Below, piece by piece: positions 10,783 to 23,279 of a stretch of DNA of 64,000 bases. The translations under genes and the position numbers were made by a program. The stretch covers positions 8,556,001 to 8,620,000 of the forward strand of contig CATNEN010000029.1 in NCBI GenBank assembly GCA_950097015.1. Reading direction: 5' to 3'. Origin of the DNA: Macrostomum hystrix. Taxonomy: Eukaryota > Animalia > Platyhelminthes. Every line of letters begins with the position of its first letter. Positions within the stretch are counted from its first letter, which is position 1. The notes beneath the pieces are model-generated. The model had not been told where the DNA came from and searched no databases. It worked only from the letters and a program-made list of their open reading frames with translations.

Positions 10783-12012
<1,230 letters not shown>

Positions 12013-13120
12013 CGAAATTCATCACTCACTGTTGCTCTAATCAGACAAAGAGTCTATGTAAACAGTTTTCTGCCTTGCTTATCAGCAACTTTGTGTTGTC
12101 CGTTAGTTTGTTAGTTTTTTATCATACAGCTTCATGCTTTTTTGACCCTTTCTTTGTTGCTATCGATGACACTGCTTGATTCGTGTCTGTTTTTATCGCA
12201 GCAGCAAGCGAGCTGCAATCCGCTTCATCTATCTGCGCTCTAGTCTGTCTCATTCGATACAATTTTTGTTTCCCAGCCTCTTCTACTCTGCCGGCCCTTT
12301 GTCTGTTTGCCTGTACAGCCAGTGCAGTTCTCGGCCCACTTATATAGCTATTGTGCCTTTCATCTTGTTAAAATGCCGTGTAAAAATTGTTAACAATCGA
12401 CTGAAAAAAAGATTAATTACTCAACTGTCATTGATTTCATATCAGAGGAGTGGGGTGGGTGCCGGTAGGGACTTGTAGTCAGGAAGCGCGAAAATTTGAA
12501 AATAATGGCAACATGGCAGGGCAGGCAGTGAACAGTCATCTGGTGGAAATATCATCATTCACACCTTAACTATGAGCTATCAGTGAGGCTGAGGAATGAT
12601 GCCTCTACAGGTGGCTGCTGAAGTGTCCGGGCGGCGTTGAGCGCTGGTAAAAGCGCGGCATAATGGGAGCCGAATTGAACAGCGTAAATTTAATTTGATT
12701 TTTACCTGTCGTCCCAGGTCCCACTGGGATTCCACAATCGAGTCGAACATGTGTCACACAGCAATGAAAACTGTTGGAAAATTTAATAAAACTAATACAG
12801 CATCGATTTCATGCGGGAGGGGGGATATAAATTTATCTAATAAATAGTCACTGATTTTAATCCGATAAACTCAAAAACATCAGCACAAAACATTGGATTT
12901 AAAATTAACTACCTGCTAGATTCCGAGAAAGGAGTCTTGTCTGATTGTAGCACCTGAAAGGGATCTAGGATACCTGACCAATTCTGAGTCATGAGCCACT
13001 CACATACGAGGTACGCGATGCGTATAGTGTTTTGACTCAATGGCCCAGAGCGCTGACATACCTGAGCAACCTGAGCAACCACAGCAATTACAATAGGAGA
13101 GCTGTTGTTGCACGAAAAAC

Positions 13121-13500
13121 GGGGGTGAGTGGCAGAGTGGTTCACGCGTTTGCCTCTCGCACCAAGGTCCCTGAGCTCGATTCCGCTGCGAGGCCGCATT
13201 CATTTGGGGCGCAGTCGCGGAGAGAAGGCTTGGGGGCTTGTCGTGCAATTTACGCCCTTGAGGCCCAACCTCCAAGGCACAGTGAAAGTGCACACTGCTT
13301 GACCATGAGTAAGGGCAGATGTACACATCTGTGTGAGCATGTGCCTGCGTATACAGAATAAGTGAGCGTGTGTGCTCAGGAGTGCTCAGGCGAATTGGGC
13401 AGAATTGCCGCCTCGCTGGCAGCAGGTCTAGTGTCACCAAATGATGTTCTATTGCCTGCAGTCCTTCTGCAACTATTATTATTATTGTTGTTGTTGTATT
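13121..13500 (+). mobile_element. SINE family A, full length
   Basis: GGGGGTGAGTGGCAGAGTGG (A box)...GAGCTCGATTCC (B box), shared ~250-bp body, (TTA)n/(TTG)n tail. Confidence 0.88.
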
Positions 13501-15079: not shown

Positions 15080-16057
15080 TCAGTAGTCTGGCGTCTTCCA
15101 CACCAGGATAGCATTGCGCACAACGTAGAAGTGGAAGAGCCGGCCGACCTCGTGCGTGCAGAAGGAGCCGTACTGGAAGCGGCCGACGATGACGTGCCAG
15201 GCGCGGTCGAACTTGGCGTCCAGCTCGGCCTTCATGTAGCGGGCGATCTCGCGTTCGTTATCGAACTGCTCCTGGGCGGAGCGGGCCAGCCGCACGATCT
15301 CCTCTTTGATGTCGTCTGGCAGGTCCGGGTCCTCGGTGATGATCTTGACGCCGTCCATCACTCCAGAGGATTTCTCGCGATTGCTCTGCACCTTCTCCCT
15401 GGGGATGTTTGGTGACTGGCAGTGTGAGCTTGCTCAAAATCGAGTTTCATTGGGTTTTCCAGCCCGGCTTAATAATAATAATAATTGCAGGAGGGCTGCG
15501 GGCAGTGGCACATCATTTAGTGACACTAGACCCACAGCCAGCGAGGAGGCAATTCTGCCCATTTCGCTGACTCCTGAGCACACACGCACACATATACTGT
15601 ACGCAGGCACACGCTCACACAGGTGTGTACATCTGCCCTGACTTTCTCATCGTCAGGCAGTGTACACTTCACTGTGCCTTGGAGGTTTGCCCACAAGGGC
15701 GTAAATTGCACGACCAGCCCCCAAGCCTTCTCCCCGCGGCTGCGCCCCAAATCAATGTGGCCTCGCCTGTGGAATCGAACTTAGGGACCGTGGTGCGCGA
15801 GGCAAACGCGAAAACCGCTCTGCCACCGACCGCCCCAGCCCGGCTTACATGTACTCCTGCTTGGGCACGAGGCCCAGCGTGTCGCAGAACTCCTCGATGG
15901 TGATGGTGCCGGAGTTGTCGTGGTCGAACAGGCGAAGCCATTTCTCCACGAACTTGTCCTCGTAGTTGTGCTTGCGACAGTAGGCCTCCAGCTCCTCCGT
16001 GGTGATCTCGCCGGAGAAGTCCGTGTCGATGGCCTCATAGGCTGTGAGGAAGTCCAT
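15080..16057 (-). CDS. Tegumental-allergen-like (TAL) protein: two EF hands fused to a dynein-light-chain-like domain; exons 16057-15849 and 15398-15080, 175 aa
   Basis: EF loops DTDFSGEITTEE and DHDNSGTITIEE; DLC motif EIARYMKAELDAKFDRAWHVIVG...GSFCTHE. The apparent ATG-TAA end of the EF ORF is AT|GTAAG (donor), and the phase-2 acceptor catccccag|G joins in frame (...KQEY-M-EKVQSNREK...). Confidence 0.9.
15472..15834 (-). mobile_element. SINE family A in the TAL intron, 13-bp perfect TSD
   Basis: CCAGCCCGGCTTA at 15459-15471 and 15835-15847; tRNA-like head at the right end and (TTA)n tail at the left. Confidence 0.92.
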
Positions 16058-17414: not shown

Positions 17415-20400
17415 ATGCTGAACTTGACTTTTAACAACAGCGCCAGCGGCGGCGACACCTGCCTAAGGCACATGCAGCAGCGCAACCACCTGGTGGGCCT
17501 GTTTCTGTACTACAAGTGCAAGAACTACACCAAATTCGTGGACAAATTCTTGGAGATCCGGCAGCAGCAGGAGCAGCTGAACAGACGAGAGCTGCCAGCC
17601 GTGGTAGCCTGCATGACCATCTTCTGCCTGCTGATCCTGTTCGGCGCAGTGGGCAATGGCCTGGTGGTGCGGCTCATCTGCTGCGGCCGGTTCGGCAACT
17701 CTCCGCGCCACGTGTTCGTCCTGAACCTGGCCCTGTCCGACTTTGTACTGTGCACTGTCACACAGCCCATCAACATGCTGCGCCTGCTGCAGGACTACCT
17801 CAGCTGGGAGTATGGCACTCCGCTTTGCAAACTGGTCAACGGGCTCACAGGACTCAACCTGTTCGTGTCCACCTTCTCAATCATGGCTATTGCGCTGGAC
17901 CGGTTCCAGGTGAGTACCTGATTTCAGTTTATTTAATAATATTAAATACGCGGAATCGAACTCACGAACTTTGGTGCGAACTCTAGATCGCTCTGCCATT
18001 AACCCCCTTCGGGCTAACAGCAAGCGGTTATAGAATGGCGGAATCGAACTCACGAACTTTGGTGCGAACTCTAGATCGCTCTGCCATTAGCCCCCTTCGG
18101 GCTAACAGCAAGCGATTATAGAATGGCAAAATTGACTGCGATATGGTATATGAGGATTCCAATTTCAGTAGGTTTTGCAGAAACTGTTAGTCGCACCACT
18201 GCGATGCAGCAATAAGCAGGTAAATATTTGATTTCTGAGAATATTTGATGAGGTGACTTTTTCCGCATCCCATTTCGATGTGTCTGTTTCTTTGCGCAAA
18301 CATTACTTTTCCATTCGCACAGTTCAGGAAGTTTTAGATTGAATAATTTTTAACGGAGTGGAATTCCTTTTCTCCCGATCTCCCAATTGAAGGAATGCTA
18401 GTTTGATAGACTATGGATAGATGACTGAAGGACTGGTAGATGACTGATAGACTGTGGTAGATGACTGAAGGACTGCGGTAGATGACTGAAGGACTGTGGT
18501 AGATGACTGATAGACTGTGGTAGATGACTGAAGGACTGTGGTAGATGACTGAAGGACTGTGGTAGATGACTGATAGACTGTGGTAGATGACTGAAGGACT
18601 GTGGTAGATGACTGAAGGACAGTGGTAGATGACTGATAGACTGTGGTAGATGACTGAAGGACTGTGGTAGATGACTGAAGGACTGTGGTAGATGACTGAT
18701 AGACTATGGATAGATGACTGAAGGACTGGTAGATGACTGAAGGACAGTGGTAGATGACTGAAGGACTGTGGTAGATGACTGAAGGACTGTGGTAGATGAC
18801 TGATAGACTATGGATAGATGACTGAAGGACTGGTAGATGACTGAAGGACAGTGGTAGATGACTGAAGGACTGTGGTAGATGACTGAAGGACTGGTAGATG
18901 ACTGATAGACTGTGGTAGATGACTGATAGACTGTGGTAGATGACTGAAGGACTGTGGTAGATGACTGAAGGACTGGTAGATGACTGATAGACTGTGGCAG
19001 ATGATCGGAGAATGATGATGACTGATAGACTGTGGCAATTAACTGACAGAATGCAGATATCAAGCATTCTTAATCCAACGTAGCCGAAGGACAACCGGGC
19101 CAAATCTTATCATGACCAAAATTTCGGATGCCCGTTTGCTTGCACCCCAATCTACGAGTATGAAAAGATTATCAAGAACTAACCCTGTTGAGGCATTCAA
19201 ATTTACTCTCTGCAAAGTCTGTGGGAGAAGGATAATCCAAGGACAAAATCCTAACAAATTGCGGGGGACGTTGATATAGACAATTATTAGTTCAAGAAAA
19301 CTAACCGCTGGTTGGTTTTCTCCCGGCTGCCCCACCGTCCCACTTAAAAGATTGGACGCAGCAATTTAGCATCACCTGCGCTTGGCTAGCTCCTTTGAGC
19401 AGTATAGAGCTTCATTTTAGGCGAGACTGAAGCAGTTGAGCAATGCGCACTGCCCGTTATTGCACCTGCAGCCAATAAATTGCTGGCCAATAAGATATGG
19501 GACTGATTAGCACGAGAAAATGCAGCCGACAGCACAGCCGCAGCTATTGCGCGGCGCATCTGAAGGCTGCGTACGGCGGTTGAGTCCATGAACTGGCGGA
19601 CGCCACACCCACCCCCAATTATCCCAGCTGATGCTGGTACCCAATTAACAGCTGGGTGAACTGAAGTAATGCAGAGTTAAGTGTCTTGCTAAAGCACATA
19701 AATTGTTACAATGGAGTAGGGATTGAACCCGCGACCTTTAAGTCGTGAGCTGGACGCTGTAACCATAGGCTACAAACCCCTAGGCTAGGCTAACCAATAA
19801 TGGCTATTAGTACAACGGTTTGATGATGACAGGTTTTTAAAAGCCCCTAATGGTTCCTTAGGTTCGCCATCATCCCGCAGATCAAACAGAGCATTGGGAT
19901 TCGCAGCAAATTTCAAGTGCTAGAGTTTAAAGACTGCAGCATAGGGATTCGACTAAGAACATAAACAGTGAGCACCACTCAACACAGGGCCTGGGCACTC
20001 GCTGTTTAAATATTTTTAACTGACTGTCAGGCTCTCTTACCAGCAAAATGGTCAACGGGGACTAGAAAATGAAAAAGTACACACACACAAACAAGCCACT
20101 TGGAGATACTTCTGTCATTTCAAAATTATAACAGAAAGCACATACTCGAAAGCCTGCGTTTCATAGGTTGACTGAATCACAAGCCGTAGTAAAAAATGCG
20201 TGGCAAAAAAGTATTTGTGTATGGCATGGTTAGAGCTGTATTTTAATGGCTCAGACAATATTGAAGGTGACATTTCCATGGACTATATTTGATGATGACA
20301 TGACCATAGACTATATTTGATGATGACATGACCATAGACTATATTTGATGATGACATGACCATAGACTATATTTGATTATGACATGACCATAGACTATAT

Positions 20401-23279
20401 TTGATGATGACATGACCATAGACTATATTTGAAAATACGATAGCCAGGCTGTATTAGTAGATGACAAAACCAAGAAACAGCACTAAGAAGACCATAGTCC
20501 AAAAGCCTGAATTTAAGGTCTAGGCAATTTCAGTCTGAGTTCTTGTCTTGCATGAGATTAGTCTTGCAGAATAGGGATTCCCAAAATTGGATGGGATTGA
20601 TTGTCTGGGAAGCAATCTCAACCGGTCCTAGCGCAGGTGTTAATTGAGACGGTGAATTGGCTGGGCAAAGAGTTCGATGGCGTCACAAGAATCTGGAAAA
20701 TAATGCTACTCAATAATACTACAGCCAATCCTTGTTAGGCGCTTTTGGTTGTTTGTTTTATTTAAACAAATATCTATGCATTTCTGGCGAGAAATTTTCA
20801 AACATTTTTATCCTTTTCTAGGAAAAAAGTATTTTAAAAGCCAGTTTTCTCACGTTTCTTATTTTTTTTCGGGTTACAAACTACTGACGAGTAGTATTCA
20901 GGTTTGTTTAAATGCGTAGCTCAAATTGAAAAGTGGAAAGTTTTTGCACGGCTTTTTTCATGCAAAATGAAAGCCTAAGAGGCAATGTATAGGAAATTCC
21001 AGCGAGCCTAACCTAAGAATAGAAGCACTAGCTAGATAACCAGTTAAATGTTAATTGGCAGGTACAAATCTGCAGGAGTCAGAGGTTTGGCTTCTGGGTT
21101 CGGTAAAACTCTGAAAAATAATTTTTTTTTGTCGGTAAAATTTTTACTTAACTAGAATTTGAAGCAGATAGGATAGTATGGGGTAGATGTACAGCTAATG
21201 TCCCTATACACTATAACACTATTGTAGGGAATGAAGTATATTGTTCCAGGATACTTCTTGTTTCCCCTGGTCTGAAATTCGAACTCCATTCCTTTCGATT
21301 AGGAGTTAATTAAGGGATTTCGATAATGGATGTCGATTAAGGGAGCTTTGTCCCCTAGACTTAAGCCTCTCCGAAAGATAGATTTTTGAAGTTGTCAAAT
21401 ACCACTTCGTCACGTATTTTACCAAGGCTATATTTTCGTCACGTACCACTAGACTGTCCAGGGCCATTAGACACGTCACGTGACTGTCCATGACCATTTG
21501 ACACGTCACGTGACTGTCCACCGTGATTCGACACGTCACGTGACTGTCCACCGTGATTCGACACGTCACGTGACTGTCCACCGTGATTCGACACGTCACG
21601 TGACTGTCCACCGTGATTCGACACGTCACGTGACTGTTCAGGACCATTAGACACGTCACGTGACTGTCCAGGGCCATTTGACATGTCACGTGACTGACTG
21701 TCCATGACCATTTGACACGTCATGTGACTATTTAGGATCATTAGACACGTCACGTGACTGTCCACCGCGATTCGACACGTCACGTGACTGTCCAGGGCCA
21801 TTTGACATGTCACGTGACTGTCCATGACCATTTGACACGTCATGTGACTATTTAGGATCATTAGACACGTCACGTGACTGTCCACCGCGATTCGACACGT
21901 CACGTGACTGTCTAGGGCCATTAGACACGTCACGTGACTGTCTAGGGCCATTAGACACGTCACTTGACTGTCCAGGGCATTTCGTCACGTACCACGTGAC
22001 TGTCCAGGGCCATTCGACACGTCACGTGACTGTCCAGGGCCTTTCGTCACGTACCACGTGACTGTCCAGGGCCCTTCGATACGTCACGAGACTCTACTTT
22101 TCACCGCCTGCAGGCCATCGTACACCCGAGCCGCCTTGTCCTGTCCAGAGCCGGTCTGCTGGCCTGCGCCCTGGGCATCTGGGCCGCAGCCGCCGTGCTG
22201 GCCTCGCCGCTGCTTCTGTTCGCCAGGGTGGTGCAGAACGCGCTAGAGCTGCCGCGAGTGAGGCGCCTCTGCAGCGAGAGCCTGCCGCCGGAGGCGTCCA
22301 GCCAGCTGCTCCGGCAGGCCAAGCTGGCGTACAGCCTGGCAACGCTGCTGGTGCAGTACCTGATACCGCTGCTGGTGCTGGTGTCCGCCTACAGCCGGAT
22401 TCACGCCAGGCTGCGCAGGAAGATGCGCTACAGGCGGGAGAGCAGCCAATCGGCCTACCAGCTCAGCCGCGTTGTCCTGGAGGAGCGCAGGCACCGGCGA
22501 ACTAATCGCATCCTGCTGGCCATCAGCTTGGTGTTTGCGATGTCCTGGCTGCCGCTGACTGTCCTCAACATCTTCAACGACTTTCAGGTGCGAGAGCGGT
22601 ACCATAATAGCGGTAATCACGGTCATGGTATAACCTGTTTACAGCATGAAATCACTGTAGAAACGGATTGCTGAGGAACGATGAATGCACATTTTCTGTT
22701 TATCAAACAAAATGTGAAGAGACGGCATGACGAATGCGAACATATATCCATTACGAAGACTATAATTACAGTAGCCTTGGTTACAATAGCTACATAGCCA
22801 GCAGCTACTCGTCACATCTTATCGTCACTGCACCCCATTGGCAGGAGGGGCGCATCGACTTGACGAACTCCACCCGGGCGGGCAGCGCGGCGGCGCGCAT
22901 CAAGCGCCAGCAGGTGCCGCTTCAGCTGATCCAGAGCGTCTCCCTGATGTTTATCCTGCTGTCAAGCTGCGTCAATCCACTGCTGTACGGCTTCCTGAAT
23001 GAAAGCTTCCGCACCGAGCTGTTCCGCTTGCTGCGCTGCACGCGGCTGCTCGCGCCAGACGAGGCCGAGATCGCTGGCACCGAGACCAACGGAGGCCGTC
23101 GGCGACTGCACAGGCAGCCACAGCCGGCGACAACGCCATCACCCGAGGCGCTGCCGTTAGTGCCGACGGAACAGGTAAATGGGCGCCCTCGATGCGACCG
23201 AGAACGAGCAGCTTCAGCTTCGGGCAAGTCTGTGTCCTTTCCCACCATCGAAGTCTGGATCGATGCGGAGACCGCCTGA
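17415..23279 (+). CDS. Class A GPCR of the neuropeptide Y/F (RFamide) receptor group; exons 17415-17909, 22114-22587, 22845-23279, ~467 aa
   Basis: GN (TM1), NLALSD (TM2), CK..DRF|AIVHP (TM3), W (TM4), Y.IPL (TM5), SWLP...ND (TM6, acidic 6.59 position typical of NPY receptors), SSCVNPLLYGFLNESFR (TM7). All introns are GT-AG and phase 0. Confidence 0.9.
17950..18125 (-). repeat. Two tandem 88-bp copies containing a tRNA-like (SINE-A-related) head
   Basis: Minus strand TGGCAGAGCG...TTCGCACCAAAGTTCGTGAGTTCGATTCC; copies start at 17950 and 18038. Confidence 0.75.
18413..19035. repeat. 21-bp minisatellite (GTAGATGACTGAAGGACTGTG, with 19-bp variants), GPCR intron 1
   Basis: Direct periodicity; it accounts for the SSTTVLQ-type ORFs. 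Confidence 0.95.
19521..19780 (-). mobile_element. tRNA-derived SINE family B with CORE/MIR-like central domain
   Basis: Minus strand TGTAGCCTATGG (A box)...GGTTCAATCCC (B box)...TAGCAAGACACTTAACTCTGCATTACTTCAGTTCACCCAGCTGTTAATTGGGTACC. Homologous copies lie at 40.9 and 42.9 kb. Confidence 0.82.
20281..20432. repeat. 28-bp minisatellite (GACTATATTTGATGATGACATGACCATA) x~5
   Basis: Direct periodicity. Confidence 0.9.
21445..22090. repeat. 30-bp minisatellite built on the palindrome GTCACGTGAC, ending just before the GPCR exon-2 acceptor
   Basis: Unit e.g. CCGTGATTCGACACGTCACGTGACTGTCCA. Confidence 0.93.

Follow-up and report, generated by a model that had tools for sequence, protein, structure and literature searches.

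Among the closest known relatives of the gene considered here are the trematode TAL/CaBP proteins. They include SmTAL1-13 (among them Sm22.6, Sm21.7 and Sm20.8), CsTAL3 and FhCaBP1-4, and the window protein resembles them in having two EF-hands at the N-terminus, then a linker, and at the C-terminus a dynein light chain (DLC) domain in a chain of 170-190 residues. The function of the TALs is itself unknown (PMC3317908, PMC5431922). The family has been described 'from parasitic platyhelminths' (PMC3317908), and structural and vaccine work has called the EF-hand/DLC fusion 'found only in trematodes', hence parasite-specific, and 'seemingly exclusive to trematodes' (PMC12347358, 2025). A 2012 EST table of 'pan-platyhelminth' genes contains a schistosome 'tegumental protein' with BLAST matches in Schmidtea and M. 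lignano ESTs (PMC3510090), and part of another report describes a BLAST comparison of the S. mansoni proteome with free-living flatworms (PMC12058154). The 'allergen-like' mentions in PMC12983594 were considered as TAL evidence and rejected because VAL proteins are meant. No paper documenting the fusion in Macrostomum or planarians was found among those searched.

The window is a 64,000-nt stretch of the Macrostomum hystrix assembly (contig CATNEN010000029.1, 8,556,001 to 8,620,000), and positions are counted from its first base. Two minus-strand ORFs in 16057-15080 were listed apart, one of 70 aa (15845..16057) and one of 103 aa (15080..15391). The first-pass annotation proposed that they are the two parts of a hidden 175-aa EF-hand/DLC fusion joined through a phase-matched acceptor. 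Read from the sequence on the minus strand, the 3' end of exon 1 is GAG TAC AT at 15849 and the donor GTAAGC follows from 15848, with the apparent TAA stop of the EF-hand ORF forming part of the consensus donor AT|GTAAGC. The acceptor ..CCCCAG ends at 15399, and the G at 15398 opens exon 2 and completes a split ATG codon, after which the frame reads GAG AAG GTG CAG and continues to the TGA at 15082-15080. Exon 1, called from the ORF and Pfam (15849..16057, minus strand), starts with the ATG at 16057-16055 and encodes the EF-hand pair in codons 1-69 plus the AT of codon 70. The intron (15399..15848, minus strand) is 450 nt long, runs from GTAAGC to CCCCAG and lies in phase 2 within codon 70 (ATG); its assignment draws on the sequence and on the junctions of the orthologue and paralogues. 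Exon 2 (15080..15398, minus strand) opens with the final base of codon 70 and runs through codons 71-175 to the stop; it encodes the linker and an LC8-type DLC domain. The codon sum of exon 1, split codon 70 and exon 2 is 69 + 1 + 105 = 175. The gene is solitary in its surroundings. It lies between a homeobox fragment (homeodomain C-terminal, 11518-12012, plus strand) and rhodopsin-type GPCR exons with DRF and NPLLYGF motifs (17415-23279, plus strand).

Pfam matched both exons, and the EF-hand plus DLC architecture was confirmed. Exon 1 matches PF13499 (EF-hand_7) at 9.4e-11 and PF13405 (EF-hand_6) at 2.2e-11, the latter over two stretches of which residues 37-61 are the best, and exon 2 matches PF01221 (Dynein_light) at 1.9e-23. 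The Dynein_light (LC8) domain, also recovered through LC8 chains in the PDB, covers residues 22-102 of the exon 2 translation (15092..15334, minus strand). An N-terminal EF-hand pair and a C-terminal PF01221 domain, the features of family membership, are present in the predicted 175-codon chain (family range ~170-190 aa). The two calcium loops were assigned by the canonical EF-hand loop pattern, which is established knowledge. Loop 1 (DTDFSGEITTEE, codons 11-22, 15992..16027, minus strand) has D1, D3, S5, G6, I8 and E12, which fill every canonical Ca-ligand position. Loop 2 (DHDNSGTITIEE, codons 45-56, 15890..15925, minus strand) is likewise canonical by sequence. FhCaBP2 and FhCaBP4 differ in that Ca2+ is bound by loop 2 only (PMC12347358). 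The product would be a cytosolic protein of ~20 kDa in which a short helical linker joins two N-terminal EF-hands, both canonical and Ca2+-binding, to an LC8-type DLC at the C-terminus.

Database searches were run per exon or with the M. lignano orthologue, P0001, as the query. The best PDB match of exon 1 was the N-domain of the Clonorchis tegumental protein of 20.8 kDa (CsTAL3, 5x2e; E 2.6e-14, 56 bits). Residues 3-66 align with residues 3-66 of 5x2e gaplessly at ~45% identity, and this match ranks above every calmodulin, centrin and CDPK. Exon 2 matches LC8 chains in the PDB at E ~2e-17 and the Fasciola CaBP2 DLC domain weakly, at E 2e-4. The trematode members were reached by a profile and an exhaustive HMM search that extended past the exon 2 word search. 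This family profile was built from the Macrostomum members and one Fasciolopsis protein, and its match to CaBP4 of F. hepatica (9voa) spanned the full length, with 5.4e-38 for positions 2-177. Against 1.84 billion representatives the profile found 39 proteins below 1e-30 and ~60 full-length colinear matches of 165-210 aa. Thirty matches were looked up, and all those that carry an organism name are flatworms. The named trematode members come from Paragonimus, Trichobilharzia, Schistosoma, Opisthorchis/Clonorchis, Calicophoron, Fasciola and Fasciolopsis, with several titled 'Tegument antigen', and the Paragonimus 'tegument antigen' matches the profile at 3e-48. The other named members are from the monogenean Cichlidogyrus, the cestode Schistocephalus ('Antigen Sm21.7') and M. 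lignano, and the environmental members without an organism name are P0009, P0019, P0022, P0026 and P0073. ESM Atlas neighbors are Platyhelminthes throughout and include 'Antigen Sm21.7'. The trematode TAL/CaBP proteins align colinearly from end to end; P0012, for example, is 30% identical over 98% of the query. No protein identical to that of the window gene was present in a 5.8-billion-protein collection.

Gene structure provides a further comparison with the trematodes. Three exons make up the F. buski tegument-antigen gene (L027), whose phase-0 intron MIT|RW sits at the exact aligned site of the Macrostomum FVE|KW intron. Its phase-2 intron lies in codon A69, which is 0-2 residues from M70 of the window gene, a distance that depends on the alignment in this weakly conserved linker.

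Trees were calculated by quick searches over 89-175 columns, with SH-aLRT support only and with plain LC8 as the root. Every fusion fell into one group apart from plain LC8 with a support of 96-98. A crown clade of 51 rows (support 99) contains all trematode and monogenean members together with M. lignano P0025, P0030 and P0061, and P0046 of Schistocephalus, the single cestode member, branches just outside it. The window exon is also outside the crown, in a basal subgroup that it shares with P0001, P0003, P0004 and P0006 and with two unnamed sequences, P0010 and P0022; so far this subgroup consists of Macrostomum sequences and unnamed environmental mRNAs only. The deep branching order is provisional because the trees were quick and the alignments short. 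Placement in the TAL family by the first-pass annotation was upheld insofar as all fusions form one group against LC8 (98) and was not upheld insofar as the window gene is excluded from the crown that holds the classical TALs. By tree and domain scores the window gene belongs to the superfamily but is orthologous to no classical TAL, and its position outside the 99-supported crown means that TAL function is not simply transferable to it.

The basal position of the window subgroup next to LC8 could be explained by a convergent fusion, in which Macrostomum joined an EF-hand pair and an LC8 apart from the neodermatan TAL/CaBP proteins and the window gene would not inform on their ancestor. The strong likeness of the DLC exon to LC8 and its weak likeness to FhCaBP2 fit this explanation, whereas the EF-hand exon does not, being nearest the CsTAL3 N-domain, above calmodulins, centrins and CDPKs, and colinear with it from residue 3. 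Two intron positions and phases are common to the trematode TAL gene, and the occurrence of M. lignano fusions within the crown places the family in Macrostomum wherever the window copy sits. Convergence is considered improbable. Sequence, structure match and gene structure together argue for one ancestral fusion, and the homology with trematode TAL/CaBP proposed by the first-pass annotation was borne out by the 5x2e match, the FhCaBP4 match and the shared introns.

The word search with exon 2 matched four M. lignano proteins, including the annotated BOX15_Mlig001380g1 (P0001, 175 aa), which is labeled 'hypothetical protein' and, in UniProt, 'uncharacterized protein'. Residues 1-69 of P0001 are 97% identical to exon 1, residues 71-175 are 90% identical to exon 2, and residue 70 is the split M. 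The two genes are alike in their 175-aa length, domain order and split codon at the EF-hand/DLC junction. They differ in their introns: in M. lignano a further phase-0 intron of 92 nt separates the EF-hands, and the second intron is 82 nt long and free of the SINE. When the window gene was aligned with two M. lignano loci, similarity ran through the exons, ended at GAGTACAT|GT and restarted at CCCAG|GGAGAAGGTG, and the 450-nt window intron could not be aligned with the 82-nt intron of M. lignano. Exon DNA identity is 89-93%, and three coding blocks compared with M. lignano, which is another species at dS ~0.5, gave dS 0.50, dN 0.032 and dN/dS 0.065. Support for the splice model is comparative evidence. 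The proposed 175-aa join held up: it is an in-frame phase-2 GT..AG junction, P0001 is colinear across it, and DNA conservation is limited to the exons. With a colinear orthologue and DNA conservation bounded by the proposed splice sites, the predicted junction is no chance fit, and the locus is, by the same comparisons, a real, conserved gene.

Fused sequences without the intron were found in environmental data. Full EF-hand/DLC fusions with UTRs occur on JGI and Logan contigs of 0.9-1.0 kb that have no intron (L028, L029, L030 and L031). P0009 and P0022 are encoded as uninterrupted fusions on such mRNA-like contigs, and P0022, which belongs to the window subgroup, was present in three samples. 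These contigs indicate that fused mRNAs of the window subgroup exist in nature.

The same data bear on the reading of the locus as two genes, a 70-aa EF-hand miniprotein that ends at the TAA within GTAAGC and a 92-aa LC8 translated from an internal ATG (MDGVKII...). Both ORFs do open independently, but the conservation around them is bounded exactly by the AG acceptor and the GT donor. An LC8 of ~90 aa from the internal ATG would look normal, yet M. lignano shares the 13 conserved linker codons before this ATG, and of the five base differences in them four are synonymous, which argues against a separately translated LC8. P0002 of M. lignano (145 aa) is without an intact EF-hand part, whereas the orthologue and at least seven further M. 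lignano proteins are annotated as fusions. The split codon is common to all three nearest paralogues, and the environmental contigs hold the fusion uninterrupted. Two separate genes are very unlikely at this locus, and the single two-exon gene is the preferred model.

Some M. lignano models in the family are probably wrong in places. P0007 has a frame-shifted C-terminus, P0002 (145 aa) has a bad N-terminus, and P0005 is 235 aa long. Because several family members look mis-modeled, the public annotation under-reports the fusion.

Paralogues were sought in the assembly of 220 Mb in 42 contigs. The best four DLC matches in the genome are 100, 79, 64 and 57% identical to the query exon. The M. lignano proteins form a parallel series, with 90% (P0001), 78% (P0003) and 62% (P0004) identity to the same exon and ~58% identity of P0006 to P0001. 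This identity series indicates 1:1 orthologues in two related but different species. Contamination by a parasite was rejected as the source of the sequence: each of the four closest paralogues has an M. lignano protein as its nearest relative, in 1:1 order, and the assembly amounts to 220 Mb in 42 contigs. The first-pass annotation had assumed a free-living macrostomid host, and this was supported: the nearest relatives are all from M. lignano, in 1:1 correspondence and at dS ~0.5. To our knowledge, all Macrostomum species are free-living. The host has a ciliated cellular epidermis and no syncytial neodermal tegument.

In the three nearest paralogues (C38, C10 and C7), the EF-hand exon ends in ..TACAT|GTGAG and one base of the same codon follows the AG. 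Pairing of exon matches by contig, strand and order gave ~15 loci in the genome at which one or more EF-hand exons are followed by a DLC exon within ~1 kb, including a tandem cluster on C25 at 5860210-5874948 (5.86-5.87 Mb). In size the family of this genome compares with that of S. mansoni, which has 13 SmTALs (PMC3317908). For the C10 paralogue there are two candidates for the first EF-hand exon, ~1.1 kb apart (L021:1495-1611 and L021:2677-2973), one of which is 97% identical to M. lignano P0004 while the other is divergent. The two may be alternatives for the first exon or the result of a partial tandem duplication.

The window gene lacks the phase-0 FVE|KW intron between the EF-hands, which would fall at 15944/15943 in exon 1. 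The orthologue in M. lignano, three paralogues of the same genome and the TAL gene of F. buski all keep this intron, and its presence in orthologue, paralogues and trematode homologue alike means that it was lost from the window copy. The pattern is one of a clean, lineage-specific loss of the first intron with retention of the second.

The second intron has been enlarged by a dispersed SINE-like repeat of ~364 nt (15471..15834, minus strand), which was recognized by its genome copies and covers intron positions ~14-380. The element is present in very high copy number; a first look gave 3911 candidates for it in the genome, and 40 scored copies are 94-96% identical. The intronic copy ends in (ATT)n and is flanked by perfect 12-nt direct repeats, AAGCCGGGCTGG, at 15835-15846 and 15459-15470. 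The (ATT)n end and the 12-nt target-site duplication fit what looks like a young SINE-like insertion. Without the repeat the intron would be 74 nt long, near the 82 nt of M. lignano. Neither ARAGORN nor Rfam (E<=1) found a tRNA in the intron, and the only hit from Rfam, to mir-297 at E 0.2, is due to chance; a 'tRNA-derived' label for the repeat would be a guess from one GTTCGATTCC motif. Elsewhere in the window, the ORF translation at 13000-13440 is similar to the one read from the repeat in the intron (…ARRQFCP…PEHTR…), and this segment is probably a further copy of the element.

It is highly improbable that the locus is an unexpressed or decaying duplicate with an intron disrupted by the SINE, for the young 364-nt repeat inside the intron and the loss of the first intron, a possible sign of retroposition, have to be set against a dN/dS of 0.065 at dS 0.5, two intact exons with consensus splice sites, a SINE that lies 13 nt inside the donor and 60 nt from the acceptor with both splice sites untouched, and a retained second intron, which means that this is no processed copy. 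The locus in this free-living Macrostomum is very probably a single intact gene, with two exons under selective constraint, that encodes an EF-hand pair, a helical linker and an LC8-type DLC, is orthologous to BOX15_Mlig001380g1 and belongs to a basal subgroup of the TAL/CaBP family.

Structural comparisons started from the AlphaFold model of the orthologue P0001, which has a pLDDT of 94. Its top Foldseek match was 9voa over 183 columns, followed by LC8 chains, on which the P0001 model superimposes with an rmsd of 1.1-1.4 A, 38-41% identity and a TM score of 0.9 on the target. Canonical LC8/DYNLL is a stand-alone protein of 89 aa, whereas the window protein adds a 70-aa putative Ca2+-sensor domain and a 20-aa linker. 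Its C-terminal 85 residues share the LC8 fold and keep the WHV/CIVGR...THE strand at the modeled interface, with a one-residue insertion in the swapped-strand region relative to LC8. At 38-41% identity to LC8, the DLC domain is far less derived in the window gene than in the TALs.

When two copies of exon 2 were modeled, they formed a symmetric dimer whose interface lies at residues 65-81 of the exon 2 translation, in the strand region WHVIVGR...THE. The homodimer score was 0.35 compared with 0.01 for the best control, a pass that may reflect memory of solved LC8 dimers. The score mark was reached by 21 of 30 solved homodimers (17 of 29 among eukaryotes) and by none of 23 solved single chains. 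The dimer runs agreed in at least 98% of contacts, with a partner pLDDT of at least 85. Since the pass is possibly memory of LC8 structures, it is read as likeness and not as binding. A DLC-mediated homodimer would be expected, from the model and from the TAL/CaBP proteins (PMC12347358).

These features suggest a mechanism for the preferred gene product. The DLC domain would form an LC8-style strand-swapped homodimer that clamps partner peptides or dynein components. Ca2+ at the EF-hands would shift the N-domains relative to the dimer, and would thereby make partner binding depend on Ca2+, in line with the 'calcium-gated switch' that has been put forward for Fasciola CaBP4. The protein is best read as a putative Ca2+-regulated, LC8-type dimeric hub with predicted Ca2+ binding.

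The claim that the fusion was 'hidden' was only half right. It is split in the ORF list, but two-domain M. lignano models, including the same 175-aa model, are public in GenBank and UniProt. What is new is a member of a known family that contradicts the trematode-only descriptions, although it is already visible in public annotation. The public fused M. lignano models and the 2012 EST listing reduce the novelty, and importance is limited in that the fused models were already available and needed only to be noticed.

A fusion in free-living Macrostomum means that the design is older than flatworm parasitism. The first-pass annotation had suggested that the architecture predates parasitism, and the M. 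lignano orthologue, ~15 sister loci and shared introns support this view. Together these loci show that the design and even its intron structure existed before Macrostomorpha split from the lineage leading to the parasites. The evolutionary message, that architecture and introns are older than Neodermata, is a modest one. A design older than that split is no adaptation to parasitism or to a syncytial tegument.

For questions of function the gain is practical: the system is free-living and tractable, and this member of the family is less derived, its EF-hands being canonical and its groove LC8-like. We tentatively consider, with more doubt than confidence, that the window subgroup is a living stand-in for an ancestral 'proto-TAL', a near-unmodified LC8 dimerization hub put directly under Ca2+ control by two functional EF-hands. 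Free-living flatworms would have used it in their ciliated epidermis or in other cells, and it would have been the source of the divergent tegumental allergens of flukes and tapeworms. If this reading were true, the cellular function of the TALs would be open to dissection in a transgenic free-living model.
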